Source: Anthoceros angustus (taxonomy: Eukaryota > Plantae > Anthocerotophyta). From it: 64,000 nt of DNA. Both the position numbers and the translations under genes were made by a program. Of this stretch, positions 1,751 to 55,786 are shown piece after piece (within the stretch, counting starts at the first letter, position 1; every line of letters starts with the position of its first letter). Where the stretch lies: assembly GCA_010909165.1 (NCBI GenBank), contig MU008151.1:1-64000 (forward strand), written 5' to 3'. The notes beneath the pieces were generated by a model, which did not search any database, was not told the DNA's origin, and saw only the letters and a list, made by a program, of their open reading frames with translations.

Positions 1751-2973
1751 CGAGACCAGAACCCTTGTGTTTTGCAGGTTGTTTTCGATCTCTATGTACA
1801 AGATTTTCTACCCTCTATTCTGCAAGCCTGCATTTTTCCCCTCTTGCATTATGTAGGCCTTGAAATTTCTACCTTGCATTTAGGCAAGGAGTTTTACCCT
1901 TAATATCTGCAATATTTGTACTCTTTGCATAATATTCCTAAATATTATAATAAAAATTAAAATTATAGAAAGTATTTTTCTCTTTCTAAAAGCTACCCTA
2001 ATAAGTACTAGGTTAGAGCTTAGAGAAGGGGCCGAGCGGCCCGTTCTGGGTTCCGGAACGAGCCGCCGCGCTTTCGGATATGTTCCAACCCGCACGAGGA
2101 CGAGGGCTGTGCCGTTAGCTTTCGATTTCAGCTCCACGAGGCGGTGGAAAGAAAGCTAGTCTAAATCGGTGTCGCGCCGAGCACAGCGTGCACACTTGCA
2201 GGCAGCCATGTGAGAACTGGCAACAGTTGCAGCTGCGTCGCAGAGTGCACAGGGAGCAGGCAGCAGGCAGTCCGCGCCCGCTCCCGCCCACTTGCATTGA
2301 CTTGGGGGGCGGGAAAGCAGGCGGCACTCCGTCCCGTTCAGAGTTTCCGTGGACAAATCACTTGTCCGGTGTGGGGCCCGCCGGGAACTCGTCTACGCGG
2401 AGCGCAAACTGTATCTCTGCGGGATGCGCGTGCGCGGGCTCCGGTCCCTAGACTCGTCTGTGAATGCGATGTTCCGCGTCAGGCCCGGAGGCCAGCCGAC
2501 ACCGCGGCCGGGACGGAGTCCACCACTGCAGGGCTACGCCAGCAAGCCAGTAGCCAGCTAGGAAGGACCTGCTTTCTGTCATTCTGGCGGGGGCAAATCG
2601 GGGGCCTGTTTTGGGAGTCTGACCCAAAGCTGCTGCCTGGGTTCTCACGATTGGGGCCTGGAGAGGGCCCGGTACCCTGAGAGACCCGCCCCCGAGAGAT
2701 GCTGACTCTTCTGCCCACGCTCCTTGTGCACAAGCTCCAGCAGTTCTCCCGCCAGGCTCATCTTCCGGGCTACTGCTGGCTGTAGCAAACGTCACCACCC
2801 CACTCCTCCCTCCTCCTCTTTCTCATTTCGGACTGCACTCGCGTCCTCCTTCCCCGGCCCCGTATTCTGCCCGACCATAGCCAGCGGGCGCAGTCGTCTT
2901 GCTCTGCCTTGCGATCCCCTCTCCAGTGTGCCTGCAGCTGTGATGCGAAGGTGAGCACAGGTCCAGAACGTTC

Positions 2974-4641
2974 ATGGCTTCGTGCAGGAGCAGGGCGGCT
3001 CTGGCCGTGCTGGCCGTGGCCGCCTTCCTATCCTGCGCCTCCGCTACCAACTACACCGCCGGGGACCAGTATGGCTGGAGGCGGCCTCCCGCAAACAACC
3101 CCGGCTACTTCGCCCAGTGGAGTGCCAAGTATACCTTCTACCTCACCGACTTGATCAGTAAGTCGACATCTCCAATGCCATGCCGAATCTGCTGTTGCTA
3201 GGAATGTGAGAGGGAGGGTTTGTATGCTCGTGGCTTGCGTGTGTGGTTATGGGTGCATTGTGATGAGATGTGTATGTGACGTTGTGGGTGTGCTGTGGTG
3301 AAATGCTGCAGGATTCGACAGCCAAGGAGCCAACAGCAATGTGGTGAACATCGGGGCCTCGGAGTACCAGGTGTGCAACACATCGGATCCCGGAGGCCAG
3401 TACACCTTCCCGACCCCCGTCACCTTCAGGTTTCCGGAAGTCGGGGACTACTACTTCGCCAGCGGCATACCCGGGGACTGCCTGGCGGGGCTGAAGGTGA
3501 AGATCACCATCTCGCCCTCGTCGGGCGGTGCTGCGCCTCCACCGGGGAGCGCTTCCCCGCCGCCCATATCCGAGCCTGTGCCTTCCCTGTCTTCCAGCGG
3601 CGGGGCAGCTCCACCTCCCCGCCTTCCAGCAGCGGACACCTGCTCCGCCTAGCGGCGGCGGCAGCAGCAACTGGTTCTACGTCGGAGGACAGGACGTGGG
3701 ATGGACCATTCCGCCCTCCGCCAGCTACTACACCGACTGGGCGGATTCCGTGGCCCCGCTCTACGTGGACACGGATCGGTTGGGTGAGCGCCGTGTCCAT
3801 GTCCTCAATCAGGGTTGTGATTGCTTGGCCGCTTCCTTGACATCGCACTGTTTCTCACTCTGGGGATTCGTGGCTGTGGCAGTGTTCGTCTACGACAACG
3901 TCACCCACGATGTGGCTCTGCTGAACGCCTTGTCCTACCGCTCCTGCGACACCAGCAGGCCACTCGTCAACTTCACGACCGGGGAGGATGTCCTGGGCCC
4001 GAAACTGGCTAGCGTCTTCTACTTCAGCAGCTCCCATCCCGGTGACTGCACTGCCGGAATGCGCTTCAGCATCCAGTACGTTCCGGGATCTCGGCCTACG
4101 GGTGGCAACCTCCCCTCCCCGCCTGTGGGTGGCACCCGCCATGACCGCCCCCGGATTCTTCCTGCCGCCTCCTGTCGCCCCTGTAACCAGTCCTCCTGCT
4201 GCTCCTCCTACCTCCGGTGTCCCACCCCTTCCGTTCCGATCACTCCTCCCACTTCCTCACCACCTCCGCCTTCCGTCCCTTCTTCTGCCCCCTCACTGTC
4301 CCCCCTACAGTGCCTCCCACTGTCCCTCCGACATCCTCTCCCCGCATCTCCACCGACCTCGTTGTCCCCCTCCTTTGGCTGCCTTCCCTCCCCCCGCCTC
4401 TTGTGAGGGCCCTCCTCCCCCGCCTCCTCCGAGGACCCCTCCTCCTCCTCCTGCAGGTTTCCTACCTCCAGGACTAGTTTTGCCTCCAGGACTGGGTATC
4501 CCCCCAGGAGTGACCGCTCCTCCAGGGATTAGCGCGCCTCCGGGCCTTTTGAGCCCTCCTAGTGCGGCAATTTCGGGTGCAAGGGTGGGAACCCTCCTCC
4601 TCCTTGCTGCCCTCGGTTTGTCTTTGTTGGTGCTCACCTGA
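2974..4641 (+). CDS. Two-domain phytocyanin/ENODL-like chimeric arabinogalactan protein with signal peptide and GPI-type tail; reading frame broken by several indels in C-runs
   Basis: Exons 2974-3157, 3312-3783, 3883-4641, with phase-1 introns at the canonical phytocyanin position. Signal peptide MASCRSRAALAVLAVAAFLSCASA. Domain 1 NYTAGDQYGW...YYFASGIPGDCLAGLKV; domain 2 FYVGGQDVGW...THDV...YFSSSHPGDCTAGMRF. Pro/Ser/Thr-rich stalk and hydrophobic end TLLLLAALGLSLLVLT*. About 5 frame switches between 3617 and 4400. Confidence 0.85.
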
Positions 4642-5210
4642 TGACGGCGCAACAGTGGACATATGTTCTTGGAGCTGCCATCATCTTCAGCGCTCCCTCA
4701 GCTAAGTATTAGTTTCTCGAAGGCCAGAAGCTCTAGCATCATTGTCACATTTCTGTATTATTTGCTCCGTCTACCCTCGAAGGTTGGATTCATTGCAGCA
4801 ACCCCTAGTGTCACTGCCATTTTGTTTATCGCTTGATTTGTCGACCAGCGAACAATGGCTTCCTAGCCGTGAGAAATGTATCGTCCGCCAGGAAAAATGC
4901 ATCCAAGACCCTTCTGTCAGATTGACCACGATGGTTGAAGAAATTTGCCACAATCTATGGAAGCGACCACCTCATTTCGGAGGTGAAAATATTGCAGGTT
5001 CTAACAAACGTGCCGCGGTTTCGGTACTGTTGCGAATACGCATGTACATACATAGCATTCGGCTATGTAGCGAAGATTTTCAGCAACAACGATCTTCCGT
5101 TGGAATACACATTTGAGATGTGGCACATGACTGACTGAATTCACCCCAAGTCATGGTAGACAAGTCTGTCAAAAACTCATCAACAAACAACCCTTCTCAA
5201 CCAGCACCGC

Positions 5211-7815
5211 TTATCTGGGCTGATACATGGAAGGTGAGGCTTCAGAAGGGGAGTTATTGACAGAGCTGTTTACCACGCTGTTGGATTCCTCAGACACCCC
5301 AGTCTCCAGATCAGATGTGTGTGACTCGGGGGCACACAAATCTGTGTCATAGTTCAGAGGGCTCAAGTCCAAATTTTTCACCTTGTCCGAGTACCTGCAT
5401 TCTCGAGAGCTCAGCTTGATCCTCACAACTTCTTCCACTGCGTCCTTCATGGTGGGTCGCTCGTCTCGGAGGTGGGCCAGGCACACCAGTGCCAAGTCAG
5501 CCAGCTGCTGGACCTCCTCGAGGGCTTCCACATCTTGGCTGAGGTTGAGGCAAGGATCTACGATGTCCTCCAAGGACCCTCCGCGGATGAAGGGGATGCA
5601 GAAGGCAGCCAGATTCACCTGGGGAGTTCTCTGCCAGTCTACAGCCTTCTGTCCTGTGATCAACTCCAGTAGCACCACCCCAAAGCTGTACACATCGCTT
5701 TTATCCGTCAGCTGGCCAGTTGCATGGTACTCCGGATCGATGTAGCCGAAGGTGCCCATTGCTGCTGTGGAGACGTGGGTGGCATCCATGGGCACCAGGC
5801 GTGAGATGCCGAAATCGGCCACTTTGGCACGGCACTTCTCGTCCAGCAAGATATTGGAAGACTTCACATCCCGGTGGTAGATGGGAGTTTTGGCAGCAGA
5901 GTGAAGATATGCCAGAGCTTCCGCTGTCTCCAGTGCAATCTCCAGCCTCTTGCGCCAGCTAGCGAGAGCTCGGCCCTTCTTACCTTGGAGGTGCTCCAGG
6001 AGAGTTCCGTTGGGCACGTATTCGTACACCAGAATGGGGACTTCACACTCGATGCAGCATCCCACGAGACGGACCAAGTGGCGATGGTTGACGCTGGAAA
6101 GAATGGTCACCTCGTTCAGGAAGTAGGCTGAGAAGTCCTGTACTGGAGTCAGCTGCGGTTTGATCCTCTTGATGGCCACAACGTCTCCATCCGAAAGGGT
6201 TCCCTTGTACACCGTCCCAAAGGCTCCGCTGCCAATCTCAAGCTCCGGCGAGAAGTTTCTAGTGGCCTTGTTGATCTGCTTCAGAGTGTACGAAACAAAG
6301 CTTTCCTGAGAAGAGACACCGCTCAACTGCGAAATAGACAGCTTGCCACTCCGGGCAATAGTGGCCGATGGCTGGCGCCTTCTCCAGACGTAGAAGATGG
6401 CCAACGTCTTGAGTGCTGCTACCACAAGAATGGCTGGAACAATTATCCCTGCAAGCTCCCACATTGTACGGCACATCACAACCCGCTTGAATATCCCGTG
6501 ACAGTATACAGATTCCACCAAATTAGCCCAACTCGGCTTCATTGAAGAGCTAGCTTACCAAGCACCAGCCATATGGAGACGTGATTCTGTGAAGCAGCAT
6601 GCAGGATGCAGGCAACTCCACCACAATTCTGATCTGCATGCCCACATAGTTGCTGTGTCAGACATTGCCATTCAGGCGTGTCGTCGTCTCTGGCCCACTT
6701 GAATTGCACTGGGTGTCGTTACCTGGTGAAGCAAGAGGGGTTGGTGACACTTCTGGCAATCCTGCTGTTTCGGAAAGAGACACCGTCACTCCAAATTTCA
6801 TTCCCTGCTCACAGTGCCCTGGTTTCCCACAGATGAACCAAAAGCTCCCAGAGTCCAACAACTTGATTGTGGGATTCGCGAGATTGTATGCTGAAAGGAA
6901 GGTGGAGACGTTGCACGCTTGGTAAGCCGCTTGGCTCACCTGCAGTACCGTGTGCCTTCCTTGGTCAAACCCAAAATCTGCAGTGAGACGTTCCCACGAG
7001 GGCACATGAGTTCAATCGGCTTCCATCATCCCCCAAATTGCAAAACAGGCTCTAGGTGAACGCCAGTGCTAGGCCACTCACATAGACTGTCATAGACAGT
7101 GAAGCTCTTCCCTAGAACCCAAGAATCGTTATAGAAACCAGGGTAAGGCGGAAGCTCCCATCCAAATGTATCTCCTACAGAAAAATGCCTGCCCACAGGT
7201 GGAAGCGACGCTTCCGGGCTAGGAGCACTCCCAGGCGACGAAACAGAGTCGCCCGGATTAGGCGCAAACGCAGGCAGCGGGGCAGACGCGGGGGCAAGCG
7301 GCCTCGGAGGATGCAGATGAAACGAAAAGCGCATTCCTTCTCGGCAGTCTGCAATGTCCGCACTTATAAAGCTGACGGTGTCGTTGTCCGCTGGGAAGCC
7401 AGTGAACTGAAGCACAACATTATTCGGATACTGCAGCACAAGGTAAGGGTCCGATGCGTTGCAGTCCAGGTAGCCAAGTCTTCCGACCTGCACCACATTG
7501 TGCTTGCTGGCGTCGAAGCTAAAAACTGCACAGCGCAAGGAAGAAGAAATCTACATGGTCACTCGCACAAACTCCCACATCTGCAATTGCTGCAACAACC
7601 ATTCCAGCACCATACAGCGACTGACCCAGATAATCTCCGGCAAAAAAGTTGCGTTCCGATGCCCACTCATCGTAGAAGCTCTCCGACGGGGGCACACCCC
7701 ACCCATACCTTTCCCCCACATCATACAGCATCTGCCCCTCCACCTCCACTCCAAAACGATGCACAATCCATACTAAAAAACCCACCAGCACCGCCGATCC
7801 AGCCCACGGACGCAT
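5211..7815 (-). CDS. Receptor-like kinase with two phytocyanin ectodomains and a WAK-like RD kinase (737 aa)
   Basis: Exons 7815-7626, 7525-7082, 6977-6664, 6586-6559, 6448-5211 with GT-AG ends total 2214 nt and are open. Signal peptide, two plastocyanin-like domains separated by an Ala/Pro linker, TM helix VSIWLVLGIIVPAILVVAALKTLAIFYVW then RRR. Kinase motifs GSGAFG, VAIK, HRDVKSSN, DFG, GTFGYIDPEY. Confidence 0.9.
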
Positions 7816-9533
7816 CTTCCGGGACCTTCAGTCGCCTCCCACTCTCGCTCCTCCTGACGAAGGTGTCTCGGAATTCCAAATCCTCCTCATCTCCGCAGCC
7901 CGGAGCTGAACCTTGCATGCCGCACCCTCACAGGGCGGTAATACTGGACAACAAAACTTGTGCGAGGAAGAGCTGTGTGACATCCATTCCACTTCCTCCA
8001 GCCATCCATCGGAATTCCTTCCCCACACACTTTTTCAAATTTGTAACCAAAAGCTCTCCCCCAACGCCCCTCCGAACCCCTCGCACAACAGAGATGAGTC
8101 CTGTGCCCGAAAGCTAAGCTGATAAAAATCGGGGTGGGAGAAAGAAGGCTGGAGGCAGTGGAGGACAGATGTATGATGTACCAGCCTGCATGAACAGGCT
8201 TTGCACGCCCCAGAGACAATCATGCCTACATAGCCCAAAGCCGCATCTGACGTAGAAGTGTGAGGAAAAGCGGGCCCAGGTGTTCCGCAGCAGACGGGCA
8301 CGCCAGGCACAAAAATCTGCACCCGGCATCAACCAGGAAGCAACAGCTGTGTGATATCCACCCGCTGCCCTCACCACCTGTTGCAGCGGACAGGGGTGGC
8401 TCTGCCAACCTGCAACTTGCTTTGCTCAAAAAAGGCGGTGAAGCTCGGCACCAGCTCTGCCTAACAGGTTGTCTAGTCTACCAACTGCCATGGCGATTCC
8501 CGCTCTGGTGTTGCACATCCTTTCCGGTGTCCAGGTGTGCGCGTTTGAGCGGAGGCCGCACGTCGCTCCTCCACTGCCCACCAACCCTTACCGTTGCTTG
8601 GGCGCGGTGGGAAAAGGGAGCCGGTAACGGAACAATAACACTAACAGTGACAGTAACAGTAACAATAACAGGGACCTGCAAAGTGCAAACCCACGAACGA
8701 CAGCATGTCAGGTTTGAAGCGGGGCCTGACGACTCGACCAGCTGCCGTCAGTTCAGTACATAAATGCCCATGATTGCCATGGACGTCGAGCCAATGGCCG
8801 TCGCCTGTCGTGACTGCCGACTTCCCCCGCGTGCCCCCTTCGGCCGCATTATTTATTGTTACATATGTGCAGGTTGTTTTTCAATTTCTTTTCCCGAGGA
8901 CGATTGCAACACGTGTCCTTGAGGTACCTACTAGCTTTGATGGCGGACGCTGCTGGGCACGACGGTGATGGCCTCTGTGTGGGAGGTAGGGCACTCGTAC
9001 AGTACACCAACTAAACCAGCACACATATGTACATACAGTATGTACAGGCAGGCAGTACAAGATACACTTCTCTTGGGCATACAGTACATGTGTGCGGCTG
9101 TTGTGAAACAACGACCCAACGTATGTACGTGGGACAGCAACCCAACGTGCAAGATATGCACAAGAGTGCCTCCAGGAAACCAGCTTATTCGTAAGGAACA
9201 TTCTCTTGGTGAGATGCTGCGTGTTGGTTGTGTGCAGCTGGTTGAGAAAACTTTGATTTGACATGTTGGGGTGGAATGCATCCAAATGTACATATCTTGG
9301 AAGGCCCAGCGTGTCACAGGACACAGGATGTCCCTCTTGCCTGGTCTGGAATCCTGGATTCGTAAAGAACCTTGCACGTGTGGAGATCGTGGAAAAGAGA
9401 CCCACCGCAAAAGAGACAAGGCTGTCTTGCTGGGATCGTACACGCACAGGGGCCTCAATTAATTCCGTTTCCGATGTTTATCAAGTACTTTGTGAGCTGC
9501 GTACAGCTTGGGCCATAGTATGGCATGCCGTTT

Positions 9534-14742: not shown

Positions 14743-16125
14743 CTACGCGCCTAGGAGATGCACAAGGCAAACTGCGAACATTCCAGCGGCAACGCCTGCA
14801 CAGTGTGAAGAGCAGGTCAGACACAGTTGATCGCTGTTCACTAATCGTCTTGGCAATCTCATGTGGCATTGAAGTACTTACTCCGGTGGAAAGCGGCCCG
14901 AGCAGGACTCGGGTTTGGTGAATTTGAGCCTACAGGATTTTCACACAGATATGGTGCTCCAGGCTTCTTTCCACAAGTATCTGCAACGATAAGGGGTATA
15001 GTCAGCCAATGTGAAGCTTGCATGCCCAAATGGGAGTGAAAGTGCTGCTGGCAGGAGTTGCCATACCTGCTGAGGTAACGTTCTGCACAGAGAAGTCCGC
15101 GATAACTGTGCTGCTTGAAGATATGTCTCCGTGAAGGGTGAGTATGAGGTGGTAGTGATCCTGAAACGCCTTAGCAAGGCCCCAAAGGTCGACAGAGACC
15201 AGGTACGTGTCATTGTCGGGCTTCAAGACGTAGGTATTGTCGTAGGAGATGGGGGAGGCTGGAGAATTCGAGTTTGAGTAAAAGTCGAGTTCGTAGGACG
15301 GAGGCAGCTCGACATCTGTGTCAATGGCATTGGAAAAGGCGGTCAGATCTGCTTTCTTTAGAGAACGTCACTGGTTAGGGTCTGCTCTTACTCAGCTGGT
15401 CGCCATTGAAGAAAGTCCTGGCATGATTTGGGTCTTCGTAAACGTAGGCGCTGTCCTGTGGAGGAACGAGGCTGCCGAACGAGTTGGTCGCCGTGCCATT
15501 GAGTTGTTGCATGCCCACATTGTAAGCAACCCCCACGTCTCTGTCTAAGAAGAATATCTGTGATAGATCCGGGTTAACGAAGAAGGTGAAGAGAAGTCCC
15601 GAGTTGCAATCTGGTCGTTGAGACCTGACGGTGTAGGTTATGTTCGTCTTCAGCAGCACCAGGCTCACATTGGAGGTGAACTGGTTCACTGATGAGGCCG
15701 GATTCTGACAAACTGATCCTGTTGTGGTGCTGTTATGAACCGATGTGATGACTATGACTGGGTGGTTTGTCCCAGCATCAGAGGTGAAAACTGCAACGAC
15801 GCAAAACGAAGCACAAGAATGATGCAATCCTTACTCTGACGAACTGAAGATTCCTGAAGTTCAACTAGCCGACAACTATTCATCAGAGCAGCTTACCAAG
15901 TACATCGCCTTGTTGAGCATTGTGCAGGTTGTCGTCAGCCCACCTCTGGAGGAAGGTAAGATTGGCTGGTTCCTGAGTATTCCATCCAGCGGCCCCTCCC
16001 ACTGTATAAAAGTTGGTACCTTTACCTATAGGGTTGAGAAGTATTCTTTGCGCGTCAGCATGTACGACGACGGCAGTCGAGGCTATCAGTATGAGCAAAG
16101 TTAAACTTAGACTGTTCAGCCCCAT
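14743..16125 (-). CDS. Phytocyanin domain fused to an unrecognised domain, GPI-type tail (paralog A, 353 aa)
   Basis: Exons 16125-15897, 15790-15392, 15348-15067, 14980-14882, 14795-14743 total 1062 nt and are open. Signal peptide; FYTVGGAAGW...GDVL|VF phytocyanin start; RDVGVAYNV...FGSL...FFNGDQL; TCGKKPGAPYLC; hydrophobic end SVAAGMFAVCLVHLLGA*. Intron 2 is only 43 nt, so that junction is less certain. Confidence 0.8.
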
Positions 16126-16142
16126 TTCTAAGGTATGGCAAT

Positions 16143-16904
16143 CTAGGGTGCCCTTCTGACAAACAGACGCAACTTCTTGCCTTTCTCCTGTTTCTCCCTC
16201 TTGGTCACTTCTTTTGGGGTATCCTTCTGCTTTTCTTCCTTGTCCTTCTTTTCTGCTTTGTCCCTCTTCTCTTGTTTCTCCTTCTCCTTCTCTAGCTTCT
16301 TCGTCTCCTTCTCTAGTGTCTCCCTCTCCTTCTGTGTCAGCTCTTTGGGTTCGTCCTTCTTCTTTGCTGCCTTGTCCTTCTTCTCTTGCTTCTCCTTCTC
16401 CTTCTCTAGCTTCTTCTTCTCCTTCTCTAGTGTTTCCCTCTCCTTCTTTGTCAGCTCTTTGGGTTCGTCCTTCTTCTTTGCTGCCTTGTCCTTCTTCTCT
16501 TGCTTCTCCTTGTCTTTCTCTAGCTTCTCCTTCTCCTCCTCTAGCTTCTTCTTCTCTTTCTCTAGCTTCTCCTTCTCCGTCTCTAGCTTCTTCTTCTCCT
16601 TCTCAAGTGTGTCCCTATCCTTCTTTGTCAGCTCTTTGGACTCGTCCTTCTTCTTTGCTGCCTTGTCGTCCTTCTTCACTTCTTTGTGCTCCTTCCCTGC
16701 TTTGTTCTCCTTCTCCGCTTTCTCCTCTTGCTTGGACTTCTTTTCCTCCTTCGGCTTCTTCTCCTCCTTCTTAGACTTCTCCTCCTCCTTGGACTTCTTC
16801 TCCTTCTTCGACTTCTTTTCTTCCTTGGCTGGTTTGGCAGTCACCTTCGGATCACCCACTCCGTCTGAAGTCTTGACAAGCAAAATTTTGTATCCAAAAC
16901 ACAT
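16143..16904 (-). CDS. Lys/Glu-rich repeat ORF of unknown function
   Basis: 253-codon ORF with about 3 copies of a 38-aa unit KDKAAKKKDEPKELTKKERETLEKEKKKLEKEKEKQEK plus heptad EKEKKKL repeats. May be the last exon of an upstream chimeric gene. Confidence 0.45.
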   Translation of the reverse strand: MCFGYKILLVKTSDGVGDPKVTAKPAKEEKKSKKEKKSKEEEKSKKEEKKPKEEKKSKQEEKAEKENKAGKEHKEVKKDDKAAKKKDESKELTKKDRDTLEKEKKKLETEKEKLEKEKKKLEEEKEKLEKDKEKQEKKDKAAKKKDEPKELTKKERETLEKEKKKLEKEKEKQEKKDKAAKKKDEPKELTQKERETLEKETKKLEKEKEKQEKRDKAEKKDKEEKQKDTPKEVTKREKQEKGKKLRLFVRRAP

Positions 16905-23610: not shown

Positions 23611-23911
23611 GAGCAATGAGCAATGAACGCGAACCCAGGGCCGGGAGGACTTGGTTGGGGCAAAAGCAAGAGCCGGAGTTCTAGAGAGAAGTTGTACGTA
23701 CCCCGGAGTAGCCGGTAGATATCCGCCACGATGTACCGTATAATGTATGATGTTGGTCCGAGCCTGCCTTTAGCAGAGGCGCGTGGAAGCGTACGTCCTA
23801 ATACATGATGGACAGGTGCGCTCCCTGCTGGGCGAGAAGCAGCCGACGTCTGCATACAGGGAGTCTGCTTGATGAGGGAACACGCTTGTGTGGTTTTGTG
23901 CGCAGAGTAAG

Positions 23912-25274
23912 ATGGAGTTGGTTGCAGCTGCAACGTGGTGGACCGTTCTGGCAGTCTTGTTGTTGGGGAGTGCTTCCTCCTGCGGTGCCGCCGTGAACAG
24001 CAGCAATGTGGGCAGCCTTGCGTGGCCTGGCCCGTTGGATATCCTCAACGTCGGGGGAACGTACGGCTGGAACATCCCGCCCAACGGGACCTTCTTCACC
24101 GAGTGGGCGGATGGGAGCATGCCGGACGCTGCAATTGGGAATGTGTTAGGTCGGAGCTCTTGTCCTGCTAGCCTGAGTTTGGGTTTACAGCACACCTCCT
24201 GCTTGCCTCACTGAGGCGCCGTTGCCACAGTCTTCAGGTCCAATCCAGGCTCCAACAGTAGCGTCGTTGTCTTCACCACCAGTGACCCGTCCGTAACCGC
24301 TCAAAACATATGCCAGAACAAGAATGTGGCAGGGTCCTCTTGGGGGACCAACCATTTCACGACTCAAGTCAGCCTCATCTTGCTCAAGGCTGGGGTCACG
24401 TACTGGTTTGTGTCAGGGTATGGAGGGGACTGTGAGGCTGGGATGGCCTTCAAGGTCACGGTGAGTCAGGGATCTGTTCCTGATGTCACACAGAGGGATG
24501 TTGGCGTGGCCTACAATGTGGAGTATTCTGATACCAGTGGGGCGAAGGTTTCTGGCTTCGGCTCTTTGATAGCACACCAGCCTGCATCATTTGACAACTC
24601 GTCTGCCAATGCAGGGAGGTATTTCAACGGAGATGCCTTGAGTAAGTAGATTTGTCTCCAACAAGCTTCAGCTCTGAGTTGCAGGGGCCGGTTTAACATG
24701 ACGTGAATTATGGTCGTTTCTGTACTCCAGATATCGCTTTCTTTGAGTACAACAAACTGTTTGTGAGTGCAAAATCGGGGGGTGAGGCCTCCTGCCAGAA
24801 TTTTGATACACAGATTTCTCTTGGCGGTGGACTCTCCACGAATTCCTCCAACAATTTGCTGTATCTGAGTGTGTTCCTTAGAGTATCCGATGGTGATCAC
24901 TACTCCTACTTCTTGTCGGCCACCGATAACTGCGATCAAGGGATCAAAATAGTAGACCTCTCCATCCGAAAAACGTCCGCTGCAGGTCAGAGCTTCTCAA
25001 ACTAGGCGGGAGCATAGATGTTTCTACCAGCCCTGCTTACAGGTGTCACTCCCTCAATGGGTGCAGGTACTTGTTCCGAGAATCCAGGATCGCCGTACAT
25101 CTGTTCACATGCAAGCACAATTTCAGGTTCGGCTGACACTGTCTTCCAATATGATATGAACATGCATGTTTCTTACCTGTTCAGTAAAGAAAAGGGTGGT
25201 GGCTTGCAGGTTACAAACTGCTGATCGGCTCTTCCTTTCTCTTCGTTATTCATCTTTTTGTGGTGTGCTTATGA
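23912..25274 (+). CDS. Phytocyanin domain fused to an unrecognised domain, GPI-type tail (paralog B, 350 aa)
   Basis: Exons 23912-24149, 24231-24641, 24731-24985, 25043-25126, 25210-25274 total 1053 nt and are open, with the same intron phases as paralog A. LNVGGTYGW...GNVL|VF, YWFVSGYGGDCEAGMAF, RDVGVAYNV...GFGSL...YFNGDAL, TCSENPGSPYIC, hydrophobic end LLIGSSFLFVIHLFVVCL*. Confidence 0.82.
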
Positions 25275-39701: not shown

Positions 39702-42700
39702 ATGCCAGTCATGGCTGCCTGGAGCTGCTCAATTGGTGGCTTCGCAGGTATATCAGGAAGAGCTGCCGCTCACCTGACTGTAGCCGACCCACCGTGGCCT
39801 AGTAAGGCAGCCAGCCGCAGCAGCCTTGCAAGGCCTTCAGTCCCTGCAGAATTAGATATGCAGGTAGGTCGTCCTGATCCTGTGCCTCGCAGGCCTGCAG
39901 AGTCTGAAAGGGTGGTAACAGGTGAAATTGTGAGCAGATTATGCGAGCAGGGGCAGCTCAATGAGGCCGTTGAGGCTCTGGGAGTTCTGGTGCAGACAGA
40001 CAGTCGTGTTTTGAAAGCTGTCTTTTACGCTCTTGTAAGGAAATGTGTAGCCATAAAGGATCTAGTTCTGGGGCGCCGTGTTCATGCTCTAACTGTCGAA
40101 AATGGGTATGAATCTGACACGTTCTTGTGTAACCACATCTTGCGAATGTATGCTTCTAACGCCAGGTTGCAAGAAGCGATGGATGTGTTCACCATTGTTG
40201 CCAAACCAGATGCTTTCATGTGGTCTTCCATAATCTCTGCGCATGTTAAGCACGGACATGCGGATGAGGCCATTCAACTGTATCAGGAAATGCGTGGGTC
40301 AGATGTGAAGCCAGATTGCCATGTGTTTGTAGCAGCCTTGCAGGCTTGTGCGAGGGGAGCAGATTTGGAAGCTGGGCAGCAGGTGCATGCTGATGTGCTG
40401 GCCAGTGGGGTCGAGCCTGACTTGTTTGTTTGTAATTGCTTGGTGGACATGTATGCAAAGTGTGGCAGCTTGGAGGACGCTCAGAGGGTGTTTGACGGAC
40501 TTGGTCAGAAGGATGTGGTGACCTGGAATGCCATGATGGCAGGATATTACCAGCAGGGCATGGGTCAAGAAGCCCTTCGTCTTTACAGTGCTATGCAGCA
40601 AGATGGCGTGGATGCACCTGATTGTGTCACATTTGTTTGTCTCCTGCAGGCATGTGCCAGTGTGGGTGCCCCGGCTTTGGAAAGGGGAAAGCAGCTTCAC
40701 CGACAGATTGAACAACAGAGACTCCATGTCGATGTGGTTCTCGGTTGCAGCCTGGTAAACATGTACGCAAAGTGTGGCAGCATGGAGGATGCTCAGAGCG
40801 TGTTTGACAGACTTGGTCAAAAAGATGTGGTAACGTGCACCACTCTGTTGGCGGGATATTCCCAGCAGGGCATGGGACAGGAGGCCCTTGATCTTTACAG
40901 CGCCATGGAAGAAGAAGGCATTGCTTCACCCGATTCTGTGACATTTGTGTGCCTCCTGCAGGCATGTGCAAGTGTGGGTACTCCGGCTTTGGAGAAGGGA
41001 AGGAAGTTTCATAGACAAATTGAAGAACAAGGAGTTGCGGTTGATGCTGTCGTAGGCTGCAGCCTGGTAAACATGTATGCCAAGTGTGGTAGCCTTGAGG
41101 ATGCCCAGATGGTGTTTGACAGGCTTCCACAAAGAAGTGTAGCAACGTGGACTGCTCTGATAGTAGGCTATTCACAGCAGGCAGTCGGTCAGAAAGCCCT
41201 CGATCTCTACAGCGCTATGCAAGAAGAGGGTGTCGATGCACCTGATTCTGTAACATTCGTGTGCCTCCTGCAGGCATGTGCTAGTGTGGGTACCCCAGCT
41301 TTGGAGAAGGGAAAGGAGCTTCATAGACAGATCGAAGAAAGAGGGTTTGAGGTTGATGTTGTGGTAGGCTGCAGCCTGGTGAATATGTATGCGAAGTGTG
41401 GCAGTCTGCAGGATGCTCAGGCCGTGTTTGACAGGCTTCCTCGGAAGAATGAGGTTACCTGGACCGCCCTGATAGTAGGATATTCCCAGCAAGGTATGGG
41501 TCAGGCAGCCCTAGATATTTTCAGTGCTATGCAAGATGAAGGCATCGCTGCACCCGATACCGTGACATTCGTGTGCCTCCTGCAGGCATGTTCAAGTGTG
41601 GGTAACTCGGCTTTGGAGAAGGGGAAGCAACTACATGCACTGATTGGAGAACGAGGACTTCAAGCTGATATGACTGTAGCCAACAATTTGATAAGCATGT
41701 ATACAAAGTGTGGCAGCCTAAAGGATGCCCAGAGGGTGTTTGACAGCCTGTGTCACAAAGATGCTGCAACCTGGACTGCACTAATAGCAGGATACTCCCA
41801 GCAGGGCATGGGTCAAGAAGCCCTTCATCTGTACAGTTGTATGCAAGACGGATGCAGCGCTGCTCCCACTTCCGTGACATTCGTGTCACTCCTGCAGGCA
41901 TGTGCAAGCGTAGGTTCTCCTGCCCTGGGAAAGGGAAGCAGCTTCACGCGCAGATTAGAGAAAGAGGGTTTGAGGTTGATGTTGTGGTAGGCTGCAGCCT
42001 GGTGAATATGTATGCGAAGTGTGGCAGTCTGCAGGATGCTCAGGCCGTGTTTGACAGGCTTCCTCGGAAGAATGAGGTTACCTGGACCGCCCTGATAGTA
42101 GGATATTCCCAGCAAGGTATGGGTCAGGCAGCCCTAGATATTTTCAGTGCTATGCAAGATGAAGGCATCGCTGCACCCGATACCGTGACATTCGTGTGCC
42201 TCCTGCAGGCATGTTCAAGTGTGGGTAACTCGGCTTTGGAGAAGGGGAAGCAACTACATGCACTGATTGGAGAACGAGGACTTCAAGCTGATATGACTGT
42301 AGCCAACAATTTGATAAGCATGTATACAAAGTGTGGCAGCCTAAAGGATGCCCAGAGGGTGTTTGACAGCCTGTGTCACAAAGATGCTGCAACCTGGACT
42401 GCACTAATAGCAGGATACTCCCAGCAGGGCATGGGTCAAGAAGCCCTTCATCTGTACAGTTGTATGCAAGACGGATGCAGCGCTGCTCCCACTTCCGTGA
42501 CATTCGTGTCACTCCTGCAGGCATGTGCAAGCGTAGGTTCTCCTGCCCTGGGAAAGGGGAAGCAGCTTCACGCGCAGATTAGAGAAGGAGGACTTGAAGC
42601 TGATGTTGTTGTAGGTTGCAGCCTGTTGAACATGTACGCAAAGTGTGGCAGCCTAGAGGATGCTCAGGATGTGTTCGACAAGCTTCCTGAAAGAGATGTG

Positions 42701-43576
42701 GTGACATGGACCGCGCTAATAGCAGGATATTCCCAGCAGGGCATGGGTGAGGAAGCCCTTCGCCTTTACGGTGACATGCAACAAGAAGGCATTGCGCTAC
42801 CTGGTTCTGTGACATTTGCCTGCCTCTTGCAAGCATGTGCAAGTGTGGCAGCTTTGCAAGCAGGGAGGCAGCTTCACGCACAGATTGTGGAACAAGGGCT
42901 TCAAGCTGATGCGTTCGTCGCCATCAGTCTACTTAACATGTATGCAAAGTCTGGCAGCATGGATGACGCACAGCAGGTGTTCGATGGGTTGTTACAACGA
43001 CACATCGTTGCCTGGAATGCTCTGATTGCAGGATACACCCGTCAAGGAGAAAGTGATGTGGTCTTCGCCCTAGTCCAGAGAATGGAAGAGGATGGCATAC
43101 AGCCCAACAGCATCACATTCCTTAGCCTACTAACAGTGTGCAGCCACGCAGGTCTAGTGACCAACGGGCGAGAGTACTTCGACGCCATGACCAGACAGTA
43201 TGGCATCACCCCCACTGCGGAACACTACTCATGCCTGGTGGACCTCCTGGGTCGTGCAGGCCACCTGGACGAGGCACTAGCAGTGGTGAGGACAATGCCT
43301 ATACAGCCCTCCGGCACTGTCTGGCACGCTCTACTGGGAGCATGTCAAAAGTGGAGTAACCTGGAAGTGGCACTCCACGCTTTCCATGAAGCAGTGAAGC
43401 TAGACAGCAAGGATGCCGCAGCCTACGTGTTGATGGCCAACACATACGCTGGTGCCCAGATGTGGCCCGAGGCCAAGGAGATGCAGGAGAGAAGGAAAGA
43501 AACAGGGGCATGGAAGGAGCCGGGCCAGACCTGGTGGACAGACATGGACGGCCTCATGCATACCTTTAGGGTTTAG
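39702..43576 (+). CDS. PLS-class pentatricopeptide-repeat protein with E domains (organellar RNA-editing factor type); one frameshift
   Basis: Intronless, about 10 P-L-S triplets (SLVNMYAKCGS / VTWTALIAGYSQQG / PDxVTFVCLLQAC), then HYSCLVDLLGRAG, WHALLGAC and WKEPGQTWW. A 1-nt deletion in the G-run at 41933-41935 splits it into two ORFs. No DYW domain. Confidence 0.93.
41336..42586 (+). repeat. Near-identical 624-bp tandem duplication within the PPR gene (2 PLS triplets per copy)
   Basis: The two copies appear identical by eye except for GGG vs GGGG near the end of copy 1. Confidence 0.92.
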
Positions 43577-47416: not shown

Positions 47417-48304
47417 TCAGTATTTGGAAGGAGTCACGGGCGGAGGGTGAGGAGAGTAAACAGGTGGAAGTGTCTCGGGAGTCTTGGGAACCTTGTAATC
47501 AGGCTTCTTCACCTCGGGAATTTTGGGAACCTTGGGAACCTTGTATTCAGGCTTCTTCACCTCGGGAATCTTGGGAACCTTGGGAACCTTGTATTCAGGC
47601 GTCTTCACCTCAGGCTTCTTGTACTTCGGCTTCTTGTCCTCCGGCTTCTTGTACTTTGGCAACTTGTCCTCGGGCTTCTTGTACTTCGGCAACTTTTCCT
47701 CTGGCTTCGTGTACACGAGCTTCTTGTACTCGGGCTCCTCGACCTCTAGCTTCTTGTAAGCTGGCTTCTTGTACTCTGGCTCCTTCTTCTCCTCGGGCTT
47801 CTTCTCCTTCTCGGGCTCCTTGTCCTCATGCTTCTCCTCCGGTAATTTCTTGTACTCAGGCTTCTTGTACTCAGGCTTCTTGTACTCAGGCTTCTTGTAC
47901 TCGGGCTTCTTGTCGTCGTCGTTCACCTTGGGGTAAGGAATGTGGACGGGCTTGGATGGTGGAGGGGGTGACTTGTAAACGTACTTGGGAGGGGGAGGAG
48001 GAGGAGAGTGAACTGGTGGTGGGGGAGACTTGTAATCGTACTTCGGAGGAGGATAGCTCTCCTTTTCCTTCTTGTGTCCCTCGGGCTTGTCCTCCTTCGG
48101 CTTCTTGTATGGCTTGTGCTCCTCATCCTTCTTCACATACTTCTTGGGACCCACGTCGCCATAGCCAGGCAGCTTTACACCAGGAACAGGAACAGGGGCG
48201 GTGGTGTAAGTCAGGAGAGATCTGCTGGCACCAACCTCCTGAGCCACATTGGCGATCCCTGCAATGAAAAGAACCACAAACAGGCAAATTGCTCTGCGCC
48301 CCAT
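47417..48304 (-). CDS. Secreted extensin/proline-rich cell-wall protein with KKPEY repeats (295 aa)
   Basis: Signal peptide MGRRAICLFVVLFIAG..., YDYKSPPPP and YVYKSPPPP (YxY crosslink motif), many KKPEY and KVPK repeats. Confidence 0.85.
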   Translation of the reverse strand: MGRRAICLFVVLFIAGIANVAQEVGASRSLLTYTTAPVPVPGVKLPGYGDVGPKKYVKKDEEHKPYKKPKEDKPEGHKKEKESYPPPKYDYKSPPPPVHSPPPPPPKYVYKSPPPPSKPVHIPYPKVNDDDKKPEYKKPEYKKPEYKKPEYKKLPEEKHEDKEPEKEKKPEEKKEPEYKKPAYKKLEVEEPEYKKLVYTKPEEKLPKYKKPEDKLPKYKKPEDKKPKYKKPEVKTPEYKVPKVPKIPEVKKPEYKVPKVPKIPEVKKPDYKVPKTPETLPPVYSPHPPPVTPSKY

Positions 48305-50279
48305 TCTCGAGCGCCTCGCGTCCTCAAATCTCCTCTGTCGCTTCAATGAATTAGAACCAAAAGAGAACTGGTGACTTGACAATCTGCACTGCCCATTATA
48401 TACTGAGCTCTTGGTGCCCGCATCCAATGCACGCACTGTAGCCATGTCTTCGTTTGTGTGCCTTGAACAGGACCAGACTGCCCAAAACTGGCCAGGCTAG
48501 TTCGTGTAATCAACGTGGACGGTCAAGGAGAGGAGCTTTTCTCGAGGTAGGCAGAGACGTCCAAATCCACCCGCAACTGCAGGGATCAAACTGCGAGCTT
48601 CAAGTACATCCGCAGGCCTGTGCTGAACACGAGGGGATTGAATTTCCTTAGTTTGGCCAAAGGCTTGAATGTTACACAGCCCGACAAGCAGGTCTGGCAC
48701 TGGCCCACCAGCACCACTTGCCAGTTGTCATCAACATGGTGTGATCCATGCTTGAATCCGACAATAGCTGAAGGGAAGGTTGATTTTACAATGTGGACGA
48801 AGGCAGGCAGAGACATGCAATGCTTGTCCTAAAATGGGCTCCAACCCATGTTACTCACATACGAAGGAAGGAAGTCACTGCACGAAGGGACGTGACTTCC
48901 TTTCGCTCCTACTGTCAGCAAAACTCGACAAAACTCAGAACGCGGGGAGACGTGGGCCACGAACTTTTTTCACTTCCATGCGTCGTTCACTTCACAATCT
49001 ACAAGCTTCTCGTGCAGTGAGAGCCTTCTTCATCTTGCAACTGCGAGGGCTAAAGAACCTTCTCTTGCAGGGAAAGATGGTTTTTTATTGAGGTGAAAGC
49101 CCATCCAGGAGGGGACAACCAAACGGGACCCGGGGGTCGAGGTGGAAAGGAGCAACTGAGCTCCCCACCTAAAGTTACCTGGCAGGGAAAGCTCTCTTCA
49201 TCTCACAACTGCGAGCACTAAAGGGAAGGTGGAGCAAGAGATTGGAAATGTGTGCATTGTTGGTTAGAATGTTATAATAATTCAGGATGCAGATCCGTGA
49301 ACACTCAGGACTCTGGTGACCCGTCCCCGCAATCCCACTCATCACCCTCCACAAGGGCAGTTGCTCTCGTGCTAGCTCCGTACTTTTCTGCGACAAGGAG
49401 GGACCCGCAATCGTTTCGCAGCCGGGAGCGGCGAAGAGAGACAGAATGCCAGTAGATCTATCTACCTACTGTAGGAAAGGAGCAAATTGTCAGGGAAGAA
49501 TGTCTCATCCGGAATCTGAAATACTTTCCTGAGCAAATTTCTCGGGAACAACGATAATGATTGCCAAGGCTTTCACTCATCAACCACCAACCACCGTACC
49601 TGGATGGGCTCACCGTTTCTCTCACCCTATGGGACTATGTCGTCCTGCAGCTCACTGCTCCAAGCCCGTGTGCTGGACCACTGAACCACTGAACCCACCA
49701 GACCTACCGCTGGGCCCAGTCACGATTATCAGTGGTATCATGCGCAGTACAAAGTTTGGTGTTGCTAGATTCTTCATCACCTTCCGAGTATCCTGCTGGC
49801 ATTCAAAGAGGCCACTGTAGAGTGTAAAAGCCACTTAGAATGCTGGGAGGATACTTGGGAGGCAACGAAGGTTGAAGTGAAGCCCTCTGCGTTTAGGACA
49901 TGCTCACAGCTGGAAGACAAGTTCAACGGAACACCCGACATTGGATTGGATCCAGATGTGGATGCCTGATTCAGCTCTACTGCCTGCTTTGAAGAAATGG
50001 AATGGGAAAGTGAACAGACAAGAAGCGTTCCTGGCTGAGAAGCTCATCCTGGAAGGACACTCCTTAGTACTCTCTGGCCAATGGCCAGAGACGTGGGAGG
50101 ATGGTTGTGATGCTCATTGAGCTGCACCTTGGGGATTGAAGCAGTGAAATCCGGAGGAGTTCTCAGAAAATGCGTGGATAGACGAGGTGAGATGCATGCG
50201 AAAGGGGAATTGACGTGCCGCGCACCTACGACTTGAAAGGCAAGCCCGAGCCAGGAAGGGAGGAGAGCAGGAGCAGGAC

Positions 50280-53816: not shown

Positions 53817-55786
53817 CTACTCCCCGGGGAATCTCACCGAGGCAGAGTAGTTCTTAATCCTACGAGCTTCCTCTTGCCTTGCGGCGATCAACCTTACTTT
53901 AGAGACCAGCTGCTGAAGAGACTCTGCTTTGCCGTCACCACCAAAGCCCCTGTAGTCTTCCTCTGCAAAGTCCTCCGGCAGGCCGTCTGAAGGGACGTCT
54001 GCCTTTGGGTTGGCCGCAAGCTCTACAGCAGCCACGTTTCCAGGGTCTCCCTCCCTCTCAAAAAACTTCTCTATTTCCTCTAACGTCTTCCCTTTGGTTT
54101 CTGGTACACGGAAGTAGATGAAACAAATGGACAAGCCTGCAATCACTGCAAATAAGAAGAAGATCCCAGCTGGAGTTATGGCATCTGACAGACTTAGGAA
54201 GGAAAGAGCGACCACCCCGCTGACAACCCTGTTAGTTGCCGTTCCAAGGCCCATAGCTTGTGACCTGAGCCTCAGAGGAAAAATTTCGGATGTCAGCACC
54301 CAACAGATGGGTCCAAACCCGATGGAGAAGAAAGACACATAAGTGCAAGTAGCCACAATGGCCAGCACAACAGGGAGTCCAACTCCACTCCCAGCTCCTT
54401 CAAGCTGCACGGGCAGCTGAGATCCGGGACCTTGGGACTTGACGTTGAGAAGCACAAACCCGACAGCTAGGACAGCTAGAGAGATGGTCATCCCTGTGGC
54501 ACTAACAAATAAGAGAGGCCGTCGGCCGACCCGGTCAAGCCAGATAGTGGCGACAAGAATAAAAGCGGTCTTGAAAAACCCAACAGCAACAGTTGCCCCC
54601 AGAATTCCTGACTTGCTGGTGATGCCAGCTTCGTTGAAGACAGTCGGACTATAATATACCGTTGCATCAATACCAGAGGCCTGCTGGAAAAACTGAATGC
54701 CTAAAGCTACTATAAGCATCCTCCGTACAGGTGGCGTCGGGAAGAGCAGTTCACGCCAAACACCCTCACCTTGACCTTTCTCGTGCATGCCTGGAGTGAC
54801 CTGCCACATTTTCCCAATGACATTCCCCTTGTTAGAACCATCCTCCAATTGTACTGACGCATCCAGCCCGGCAGCCGACACTATCTCCTGCAATCGCATA
54901 TCTGCCTCCGCTTTACTAGAAGAGGTCTTTACAAGGACCTGCTCAGCTTCTGCCAATCTGTTCTGAGTTACTAGCCAACGTGGGGATTCTGGCATGACCA
55001 GCACCCCAGCAGCAAGCACAACAGCAGGAATGACCCCCACACCAAGCATCAACCGCCAGCCGAGATGCGTGGGCAACCCAGCAAGTAAGAAACTTGAAAT
55101 GTACCCCATCAGAATCCCAACATTGATAAAGATCTCTTGAAGCGAAACTAGTGAACCCCGAGTTCCAGCAGGAGAAACCTCTGCAGTGTAAACTGGTGCA
55201 ATCATGAGAGCAAAACCGACCCCAATGCCCGCAATAATGCGGCCCAGCATCAAAATGGAAAATGAGGGAGCCAATCCCATCAGAGCAGCTCCCACAAAGA
55301 AAATGACTGAAGCCACAGCCATCGTCTTCCTCCTACCTACTACATCTGAAAGCTTCCCAGCCACTCCTGCTCCCACAAGGGATACCAGATTCAAAGAGCC
55401 CACAAGCAACTCCACCTGCAATTTTTTAATCTTCAGATCGTCCTTGATGAAAAGCACAGCACCACTCATGACCCCGATATCTGCACAATCCATTCAACCA
55501 ACCAGCTAAGTCAACTGACTCTGCTTGCATTGCCGGTAACAAAGCTCTGGATTGAAGTATGGTTCTCATCAAGTCGTATTCAGCAAAGGAACGTACCATA
55601 GCCTAGCAGGCTGGAATTGAAGGAGGCCAGCAACGCGCACCCCAAGGCATATTTGTTCAATCCCGGAGGTCTGGGGCCGGAATTGTGGTGATCCTCAGTC
55701 AAACGCTCGTACCCGTTTGTCTGCTTCAATATGCCAGTAACTGAATCCAAGGTACTTGTTGGGCTTCCCACTCCGAGTTCCGCCAT
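53817..55786 (-). CDS. PLT: Polyol/monosaccharide transporter (MFS sugar porter, PLT/PMT type)
   Basis: Exons 55786-55597 and 55480-53817. NKYALGCALLAS..LLGY|DIGVMSGA, PESPRWL, IQFFQQASGIDATVYYSP, DRVGRRPL, SEIFPLRLR, VPETKGKTLEEI. Confidence 0.95.

Follow-up and report, generated by a model that had tools for sequence, protein, structure and literature searches.

A two-domain ENODL-type phytocyanin gene and a phytocyanin receptor kinase gene lie tail to tail in Anthoceros angustus

Receptor kinases (RLKs) with phytocyanin-type ectodomains are, to our knowledge, rare and unstudied at the bench; annotated examples are found in Ceratodon purpureus (M758_5G193500/KC19_5G200500) and Cryptomeria japonica (LRK10L-like 2.4, XP_057830654). 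In Brassica, the receptor kinase gene SRK is closely linked to SLG, a kinase-less gene of the same domain type, whose freely secreted product closely copies the ectodomain of the SRK from the same haplotype. Other cell-surface pairs consist of a GPI-type protein and an RLK, and the genes of the known GPI co-receptors are not known to be generally linked to those of their RLKs. Precedents for such pairs are ENODL14/15 with FERONIA and LYM1/3 with CERK1, the latter being a same-domain pair (PMC6726743). A bulk survey (bioRxiv 10.1101/2023.12.21.572927) counts the phytocyanin domain Cu_bind_like among the putative RLK ectodomains, and two-domain phytocyanins with a signal peptide, an AGP-like region and a GPI signal form a described class, which includes the ENODL types III, IV, VIII and X with two plastocyanin-like domains (two-PCLD), considered chimeric arabinogalactan proteins (PMC4499708).

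The locus described here lies in the first 64,000 nucleotides of contig MU008151.1 of Anthoceros angustus (assembly GCA_010909165.1), and this whole stretch is referred to as the window. A plus-strand gene for a two-domain phytocyanin and a minus-strand gene for a receptor kinase converge tail to tail; both sit where the original prediction had placed them, and the distance between their stop codons, given there as about 570 bp, is 569 nt (Table 1). The two are separate, transcribed genes. We consider it likely that they are neighbours within a group of copper-less phytocyanin-type genes clustered at this locus, adjacent through local duplication and domain shuffling, with coupling between them possible. 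The window contains four copper-less phytocyanin-type genes between 2974 and ~25300; the two beside the pair, at ~15.4-16.6 kb and ~23.9-24.6 kb, were recognized with the same domain profiles. The RNA evidence is the contig set of run X1, an unstranded assembly that carries neither strand nor transcript ends. Both genes are found in the contigs of this single library, so that the expected overlap in expression holds as presence only, without tissue or cell resolution, and not as co-regulation. X1 record 2 runs unbroken over 4053-6447, from the last exon of the plus-strand gene across the gap into the kinase gene, and the 3' UTRs of the two genes abut or overlap.

Table 1. Features of the convergent gene pair (window coordinates)
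Feature	Position	Strand	Remarks
Plus-strand phytocyanin gene	2974-4641	+	ATG 2974, in-frame stop ahead of ATG; TGA 4639-4641
Exon 1	2974-3157	+	Putative signal peptide (2974-3045), domain 1 N-half; RNA joins 3157 to 3312, GT..AG
Exon 2	3312-3783	+	Domain 1 C-half (to ~3517), Pro/Ala/Ser linker, domain 2 N-half (from ~3669)
Exon 3	3883-4641	+	Domain 2 C-half (to ~4091), stalk, GPI-type tail, stop 4639-4641
Pro-rich stalk	4092 to ~4554	+	Many letters absent from window DNA
GPI-type C-terminal signal	~4555-4638	+	Rule-based reading
Inter-stop gap	4642-5210		569 nt; entirely within one RNA contig
Receptor kinase gene	7815-5211	-	ATG 7815; TAA 5213-5211
RNA-seen 5' exon	7786-7950	-	Donor GTGGGT after 7786, joins 7525, GT..AG
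Predicted exon 1	7626-7815	-	Putative signal peptide, domain 1 N-half; genome only, ORF from ATG 7815
Exon	7082-7525	-	Domain 1 C-half, Pro/Ala linker, domain 2 N-half; RNA-covered
Exon	6723-6977	-	Domain 2 C-half with complete type-1 copper ligand set, short stalk
75-nt exon	6559-6633	-	Cys-containing juxtamembrane piece, start of membrane span; phase 1 in and out
Last exon	5211-6448	-	Rest of membrane span, juxtamembrane, RD kinase, Ser-rich tail, stop 5213-5211
Protein kinase domain (RD)	~5430-6239	-	Pfam Pkinase, E 9e-45

The plus-strand gene encodes a two-domain ENODL-type phytocyanin. Its introns 3158-3311 and 3784-3882, both GT..AG, are confirmed by X1 RNA contigs, and a phase-1 intron lies inside every domain of both genes of the pair. 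Pfam recognizes Cu_bind_like in exon 2 (domain 1 C-half, E 2e-4) and in exon 3 (domain 2 C-half, E 5e-8), and in the alignment the columns of the disulfide Cys pair are invariant in both domains. The copper ligands whose loss characterizes the ENODL type (His, Cys, His, Met/Gln) are replaced by Ser, Ser or Ala, Asp and Leu in domain 1, and domain 2 has His, Ser, Asp and Met at the same positions. The N-terminus is basic and then continues into a 15-residue hydrophobic stretch (mean 2.46, best at residues 8-22). At the C-terminus, the small residues S-A-A or S-G-A are followed by a short spacer and by a hydrophobic stretch of 15-16 residues ending at the stop (hydropathy 2.67 across the last 15); judged by rule of thumb, and in a frame reached only via the extra letters of the RNA contig, this tail suggests that the product is probably GPI (lipid)-anchored. 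The putative signal peptide and the GPI-type signal together therefore lead to a predicted location at the outer surface of the plasma membrane, and the Pro-rich stalk, which contains 18-nt PPGxxx repeats at 4468-4509, is probably glycosylated. The layout originally proposed for this gene (signal, domain 1, linker, domain 2, Pro-rich stalk, GPI-like hydrophobic tail) is borne out, with the signal and the tail as predicted parts, except that in the window DNA it is not one unbroken open reading frame.

When the window DNA is read alone, the frame of domain 1 ends at the stop 3650-3652 and that of domain 2 at the stop 4404-4406. The letters missing from the open reading frame are C or G, and they are restored by the RNA contig, which has an additional C after 3616 and an additional G after 3633, being otherwise colinear in exon 2, and a net gain of 20 letters within 4108-4386 that carries the frame of domain 2 into that of the tail. 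Through these extra letters both domains and the tail come to share one frame, and the frame jumps made in the earlier reading are therefore justified by the RNA and not by the window DNA. Two ways of bridging the frames by splicing were rejected: a 70-nt intron at 3528-3597, where the RNA contig is colinear and has the two extra letters instead, and GT..AG introns in 4100-4460 leading from domain 2 to the tail frame, none of which is of the right length class and in place of which the RNA has its net 20 letters.

The kinase gene encodes a receptor kinase with two phytocyanin domains, as had been predicted, together with a 75-nt exon that the prediction had not listed and that the RNA contig reveals through its joints (6633 to 6723 and 6448 to 6559). 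Introns 6978-7081, 6634-6722 and 6449-6558, all GT..AG, are confirmed by X1 RNA. The only RNA contig of the gene joins 7786 to 7525, skipping most of the predicted exon 1 (depth zero over 7526-7785 in X1), and extends 616 nt further upstream of the 5' exon; for this reason, the signal peptide and the N-terminal half of domain 1 rest on the genome sequence only. There, the donor of the predicted exon 1 (GTCAGT, following 7626) has phase 1, the phase also seen in the other three domains, and the motif pattern of this half matches the other three N-terminal halves, its E of 5e-21 being circular, as it is one of the four sequences from which the profile was built. The stalk, described earlier as Pro-rich, is short and not a long Pro-rich one, consisting of ~20 residues plus the Cys-containing 75-nt exon, and the membrane span occupies residues ~315-343 of the gene model.

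Only the kinase makes the gene WAK-like. In the ectodomain exons Pfam shows Cu_bind_like alone (E 1.7e-4 in 7082-7525 and E 2.8e-13 in 6723-6977), the WAK-type ectodomain (GUB_WAK, EGF) being absent from them. The kinase, of the WAK/LRK10L-type RD kind, carries the motifs GSGAFG (GxGxxG), VAIK, HRDVKSSN (HRD) and DFG and appears, as judged from its sequence, to be active. When the kinase exon was used in word-based protein searches, the best matches were Marchantia WAK_LRK10L-8 (61% identity) and Selaginella WAKL20 (60%), with nothing above 61%, so that the searched collection must contain neither the proteins of the window nor close relatives; the length filter of the first of these searches left out the ~733-residue full-length class.

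The two domains of the kinase ectodomain are unlike each other at the copper site. Domain 1 is copper-less, two of its ligand positions being occupied by Ser and Asp. In domain 2, His, Cys, His and Met, plus the disulfide Cys pair, align to the cucumber basic protein 2CBP, and all four ligands align residue by residue to 2CBP and 1F56; its best PDB match is mavicyanin 1WS7, which has Gln at the Met position. With this complete ligand set, domain 2 would be expected to bind copper. All five local copper-less domains carry Asp in place of the second His ligand, in comparison with 3 of the 130 domains of other species, a count drawn from a list biased towards copper-binding domains.

In the original prediction, the plus-strand protein was held to mirror the RLK ectodomain. 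The order of parts agrees with this idea; the sequences of the domains do not, since all six domain pairs show identities of only 27-34%, with the lowest value between the two second domains (26.7%), and neither gene is a domain-by-domain copy of the other. The sister relationship that a domain tree might have revealed is likewise absent from the best tree, in which neither the two first domains nor the two second domains are sisters, and the two domains of the plus-strand gene are weakly grouped with kinase domain 1 and two other local copper-less genes. The five local copper-less domains form one group with an SH-aLRT of 89 in a quick tree of 117 rows and with 60/56 in a careful tree of 53 rows, their joins being flagged by the tree program as possible long-branch attraction. 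Domain 1 of the plus-strand gene joins the two other local genes (97/80), and kinase domain 2 is placed outside the local group among canonical phytocyanins, where it adjoins a Sphagnum protein (93/79); its highest identity, 46%, is to a Diphasiastrum protein. The power of these trees is low (107 columns, with long local copper-less branches of 1.6-2.6 changes per column), and none of the four groupings submitted to AU tests on these columns was rejected (p 0.41 for the two first domains, p 0.15 for the two second domains and p 0.39 for the two kinase domains with each other). Protein searches were run exon by exon, the joined domains being used for alignment and trees only. A profile search of 1.84 billion representatives returned many multi-domain phytocyanins and, for each of the four domains, no close relative, with best identities of 33-46%, and an atlas look-up of kinase gene exon 2 returned generic phytocyanin clusters only, all below 0.9.

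When compared with the two-PCLD ENODL types, the plus-strand gene shares two copper-less plastocyanin-like domains, the disulfide Cys pair, a Pro/Ala/Ser-rich region and one phase-1 intron per domain, together with a putative signal peptide and a putative hydrophobic C-terminal signal. However, it diverges from them in its very long Pro-rich stalk with PPGxxx repeats, in the Asp at the second His position of both domains and in a best identity to any protein found of just 33-38% (34-38% in one comparison and 33-37% in another). The kinase gene resembles the Ceratodon and Cryptomeria RLKs in the presence of one or two phytocyanin domains, one span and a WAK/LRK10L-type kinase, whereas the ectodomains are very divergent and the one described here combines two unlike domains, the membrane-proximal one with all four copper ligands. 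The Ceratodon ectodomain gave 3 matches only in a word search, and its phytocyanin domain is barely detected by the local domain profile (E 0.98). In the tree, the two domains of the Cryptomeria receptor kinase pair as sisters (99/93), suggesting that they were duplicated independently.

The layout shared by the two genes of the locus probably goes back to the way in which two-domain phytocyanins arise, namely when a domain encoded by two exons is duplicated internally. In the explanation preferred here, the plus-strand gene encodes two cupredoxin domains that have lost their copper ligands, in a protein that would be exposed on the outside of the plasma membrane, and the kinase ectodomain unites a local copper-less domain 1 with a canonical, ligand-complete domain 2, followed by one span and a WAK/LRK10L-type RD kinase. 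Their adjacency would most likely result from local duplication and domain shuffling.

The prediction had also raised two functional relationships, the first of which to be considered is a decoy of the SLG/SRK kind, where the plus-strand gene would be a kinase-less copy of the ectodomain competing for the same ligand. As in Brassica, a receptor kinase gene is closely linked to a kinase-less gene of the same domain type, and the tight linkage and the same order of parts (signal, domain, linker, domain, stalk) agree with such a role. A decoy would nevertheless have to reproduce the binding surface closely, and here identities of 27-34% come without a domain-by-domain match, the copper site of kinase domain 2 is missing from both plus-strand domains, that domain belongs elsewhere in the family according to the best tree, nearer to the phytocyanins of other plants, and the plus-strand product is predicted to be GPI-anchored whereas SLG is freely secreted. 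On account of the low identity and of a kinase domain 2 that is ligand-complete and grouped with canonical phytocyanins, this relationship is extremely improbable. Alternatively, the GPI-type two-domain protein could be a co-receptor contacting the kinase ectodomain through cupredoxin-cupredoxin interaction, most plausibly at the copper-less domain 1, and could possibly, by analogy with LLG/LRE and ENODL14/15 (FERONIA) or LYM (CERK1), aid in ligand perception or receptor delivery. The likeness to these systems consists of a GPI-type surface protein plus an RLK and, for LYM-CERK1, of one fold common to both partners; in contrast, those pairs owe their definition to binding and genetics, and this one to gene linkage. 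The 569 nt from stop to stop, the transcription of both genes in one library, the common fold with the rare His-to-Asp state shared by the plus-strand domains and kinase domain 1, and the ENODL14/15-FERONIA and LYM1/3-CERK1 precedents (PMC6726743) are in its favour. Nonetheless, adjacency is expected anyway in a tandem gene cluster, and the synteny check found no gene annotated with Cu_bind_like up to 10 kb away from the phytocyanin RLKs of Ceratodon and Cryptomeria, both distant relatives. Nor is linkage to the RLK gene known to be general among GPI co-receptors. The support for a co-receptor role comes from the adjacency, and we regard such a role as unlikely, albeit not far-fetched.

A regulatory link, whereby convergent 3' ends that abut or overlap would give rise to transcription interference or antisense RNA, finds some agreement in the single RNA contig that spans the kinase gene, the gap and the last exon of the plus-strand gene. 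However, unstranded contigs merge any transcripts overlapping by word length, both RNAs are co-present in one library and closely spaced convergent genes are common where genomes are gene-dense, so that we judge this link very unlikely. Quite unlikely, too, is a cognate one-fold module, in which the GPI-type copper-less protein would pair with kinase domain 1, domain 2 would serve as a copper/redox sensor and the overlapping convergent transcripts would keep co-regulation. The locus provides a concrete and cheap pair for studying same-fold co-receptor pairing and cell-surface copper/redox sensing; the evidence is that of two ordinary family members as neighbours, and its value lies in the hypothesis and not in the result. 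Same-library expression and abutting or overlapping transcripts are also what a functional link would predict.

Plant nuclear DNA makes up the window. Genes are densely packed in it, introns measure about 100 nt, and the pair under study has genes of PPR, H+-ATPase and sugar-transporter type in its vicinity. Nucleotides 2974-7815 are occupied by two convergent genes whose stop codons are separated by 569 nt, in agreement with the tail-to-tail arrangement and the spacing of about 570 bp originally noted. When searched with Pfam, exon by exon in the case of spliced models (joined proteins served only for local alignments and trees), all four predicted domains carry Cu_bind_like (plastocyanin-like) in their C-terminal half (E 2.8e-13 to 2e-4), and the minus-strand gene encodes a complete protein kinase (E 9e-45). 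The linkage of a GPI-type double-phytocyanin gene to a phytocyanin receptor-like kinase was correctly observed, given certain corrections to frames and exons.

Features of the two convergent genes and of the further local phytocyanin-type genes
Feature	Position or extent	Strand	Basis
Plus-strand gene	ATG 2974, TGA 4639-4641	+	ORF reading
Predicted signal peptide	~24 residues, plus-strand gene N-terminus	+	sequence reading
Linker domain 1 to domain 2, Pro/Ala/Ser	~50 residues	+	sequence reading with RNA letters
Pro-rich stalk, PPGxxx repeats at end	roughly 150 residues, approximate	+	sequence reading with RNA letters
Tail: small residues, short spacer, 15-16 hydrophobic residues up to stop	plus-strand gene C-terminus	+	
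Minus-strand (kinase) gene	ATG 7815, TAA 5213-5211	-	ORF reading
Added 75-nt exon, absent from the original model	6559-6633	-	X1 contig 2 joints
Phytocyanin-type gene, at about 15.4-16.6 kb	15378-16602	-	local profile match
Phytocyanin-type gene, at about 23.9-24.6 kb	23876-25002	+	local profile match

The corrections derive from X1, a public RNA run of one library under the same species label, available as contigs only; 72% of the words sampled from the stretch occur in it, and the comparison covered 2700-7950. Two contigs map here: contig 1 begins upstream of 2700 and follows the plus-strand gene as far as 4080, and contig 2 covers the kinase gene and extends to 4053. Since contig 2 spans the inter-stop gap (4642-5210) unbroken, the 3' ends of both genes abut or overlap; the contigs carry no strand or transcript-end information.

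In the window DNA, the plus-strand ORF is interrupted twice: the domain 1 frame meets a stop at 3650-3652 and the domain 2 frame another at 4404-4406, ahead of the hydrophobic tail, which lies in the third frame. In the RNA, a C added after 3616 and a G added after 3633 lead from the domain 1 to the domain 2 frame, and a net 20 extra letters in 4108-4386 lead from there to the tail frame. Extra C/G letters occur at 15 places or more between 3616 and 4386, all in the proline-coding part of this gene. Because all listed differences are letters absent from the window within C/G runs, and because window and RNA contig are identical over 4641-7950, the breaks look like homopolymer-type assembly errors in a C-rich, proline-coding stretch, the gene itself being probably intact. 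Once the RNA letters are restored, the anticipated order of signal, domain 1, linker, domain 2, Pro-rich stalk and GPI-like tail is recovered. Two-domain phytocyanins with a GPI signal are a described class (PMC4499708), to which the protein would belong as judged from its sequence. Both introns (joints 3157/3312 and 3783/3883 in contig 1, both GT..AG) are phase-1 and occupy the same position within a domain.

In the kinase gene, contig 2 shows joints at 7082/6977, 6723/6633 and 6559/6448, the added exon encoding a juxtamembrane segment with Cys and the first part of the membrane span. In the spliced model, 733 residues long, a predicted signal peptide is followed by D1, a Pro/Ala linker and D2, after which a short stalk leads through a single membrane span to an RD kinase, which keeps all catalytic motifs and whose nearest relatives are of WAK/LRK10L type (Marchantia WAK_LRK10L-8, 61%; Selaginella WAKL20, 60%). 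The signal, two domains and linker were noted originally, whereas the shortness of the stalk and the extra Cys-containing exon were not. The sole RNA contig of this gene, which reaches 616 nt further upstream, joins 7786 to 7525: its donor follows 7786, whereas the predicted donor follows 7626. It thereby skips 7526-7785, where the remainder of the signal peptide and the N-terminal half of D1 are encoded. This joint puts the ATG at 7815 out of frame and leaves in frame only that at 7918, from which the N-terminus has no hydrophobic stretch. Owing to a conserved N-half motif and a conserved phase-1 donor, exon 1 with the donor after 7626 was kept as a predicted coding exon, although the contig skips most of its length.

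Alignment with cucumber basic protein, plantacyanin and mavicyanin reveals that kinase D2 retains both His ligands and the Cys ligand as well as the two disulfide Cys, together with the axial Met of the first two (mavicyanin has Gln there). In each of the remaining three domains, between two and four copper ligands are missing. The two further phytocyanin-type genes each encode a signal peptide and one copper-less domain, followed by an unrecognised region opening with a common DVGVAYNV motif. Asp replaces the second His ligand in all five local copper-less domains, as opposed to 3 of 130 domains of other species. Just upstream of the 15-kb gene lies a long Lys/Glu-rich repeat ORF with KEKEKxEK-type units (16143-16904, minus strand).

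Among 1.84 billion representative proteins, a profile built on the four C-halves found 1962 matches, none of them a close relative. Trees of 130 domains cut from the best 150 of these matches, plus the two further local genes, were built on 107 alignment columns, with the local domains on long branches. The five copper-less domains cluster together (SH-aLRT 89 in a quick tree of 117 rows; 60/56 in a careful tree of 53 rows), those of the two further genes grouping with plus-strand domain 1 (97/80). Kinase D2 falls apart from them among canonical phytocyanins, adjoining a Sphagnum protein (93/79), with a maximum identity of 46% to a Diphasiastrum protein. A D2-D2 grouping is 20.6 log-likelihood units worse than the best tree, but over 107 columns AU tests reject neither it (p 0.15) nor D1-D1 (p 0.41) nor the pairing of the two kinase domains (p 0.39). 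On the best reading of these sequences, both plus-strand domains would be of the same kind as kinase D1, and the ectodomain of the kinase would be a mosaic. The proposed mirroring accordingly holds for general layout and not for sequence, the six pairwise identities being 27-34% and the best tree offering no domain-by-domain match.

The convergent genes are probably neighbours in a local cluster of phytocyanin-type genes. A true receptor/co-receptor pair would fit their adjacency and their joint presence in one RNA library, and it has good precedents in ENODL14/15, which partner FERONIA, and in LYM proteins, which partner CERK1 (PMC6726743); in the latter pair both partners have the same fold. 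However, the expression overlap found amounts to presence in X1, and both this and adjacency are expected of neighbours where four phytocyanin-type genes stand in tandem. Such a pair appears rather improbable on our analysis. Antisense regulation between the convergent genes is less probable still. A receptor/decoy pair, also envisaged originally, is unlikely, since the domains are far too different, D2/D2 being the lowest at 26.7%.

Among other plants, Cu_bind_like has been recorded among putative RLK ectodomains in a bulk survey (bioRxiv 10.1101/2023.12.21.572927), one moss transcript encodes a phytocyanin receptor kinase, and a kinase of this type in Ceratodon purpureus carries just one phytocyanin domain. 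In a 691-residue receptor kinase of Cryptomeria japonica (P0340, on stretch L003), an LRK10L-type kinase carries two phytocyanin domains of canonical kind; the tree pairs these two domains as sisters, suggesting that this two-domain receptor arose independently. No Cu_bind_like-annotated neighbour lies within 10 kb of the Ceratodon kinase in two assemblies, nor did our own profiles, which barely detect its own domain (E 0.98), find any nearby; the Cryptomeria kinase has no other gene within 10 kb. The anticipated conservation of the pair was therefore not seen beside either kinase, which is weak evidence against it, as both species are distant relatives.

The upstream neighbour of the Ceratodon kinase (L001 1341-5609 and L002 1263-5530 in the two assemblies) is a Sugar_tr/MFS transporter gene, and a 558-residue ORF at 53817-55493 (minus strand) of the window, separated from the kinase gene by about 46 kb, resembles a sugar/polyol transporter by sequence reading; this is probably a coincidence. 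Elsewhere in the window, large pentatricopeptide-repeat ORFs (39702-43576, plus strand) contain a near-identical internal duplication, marked by two antisense ORFs, 41527-41907 and 42150-42530, that are identical to each other. The protein encoded at 47417-48445 (minus strand) looks secreted; with its SPPPP motifs and numerous KPEYKK-type repeats it resembles an extensin or a proline-rich protein of the wall.
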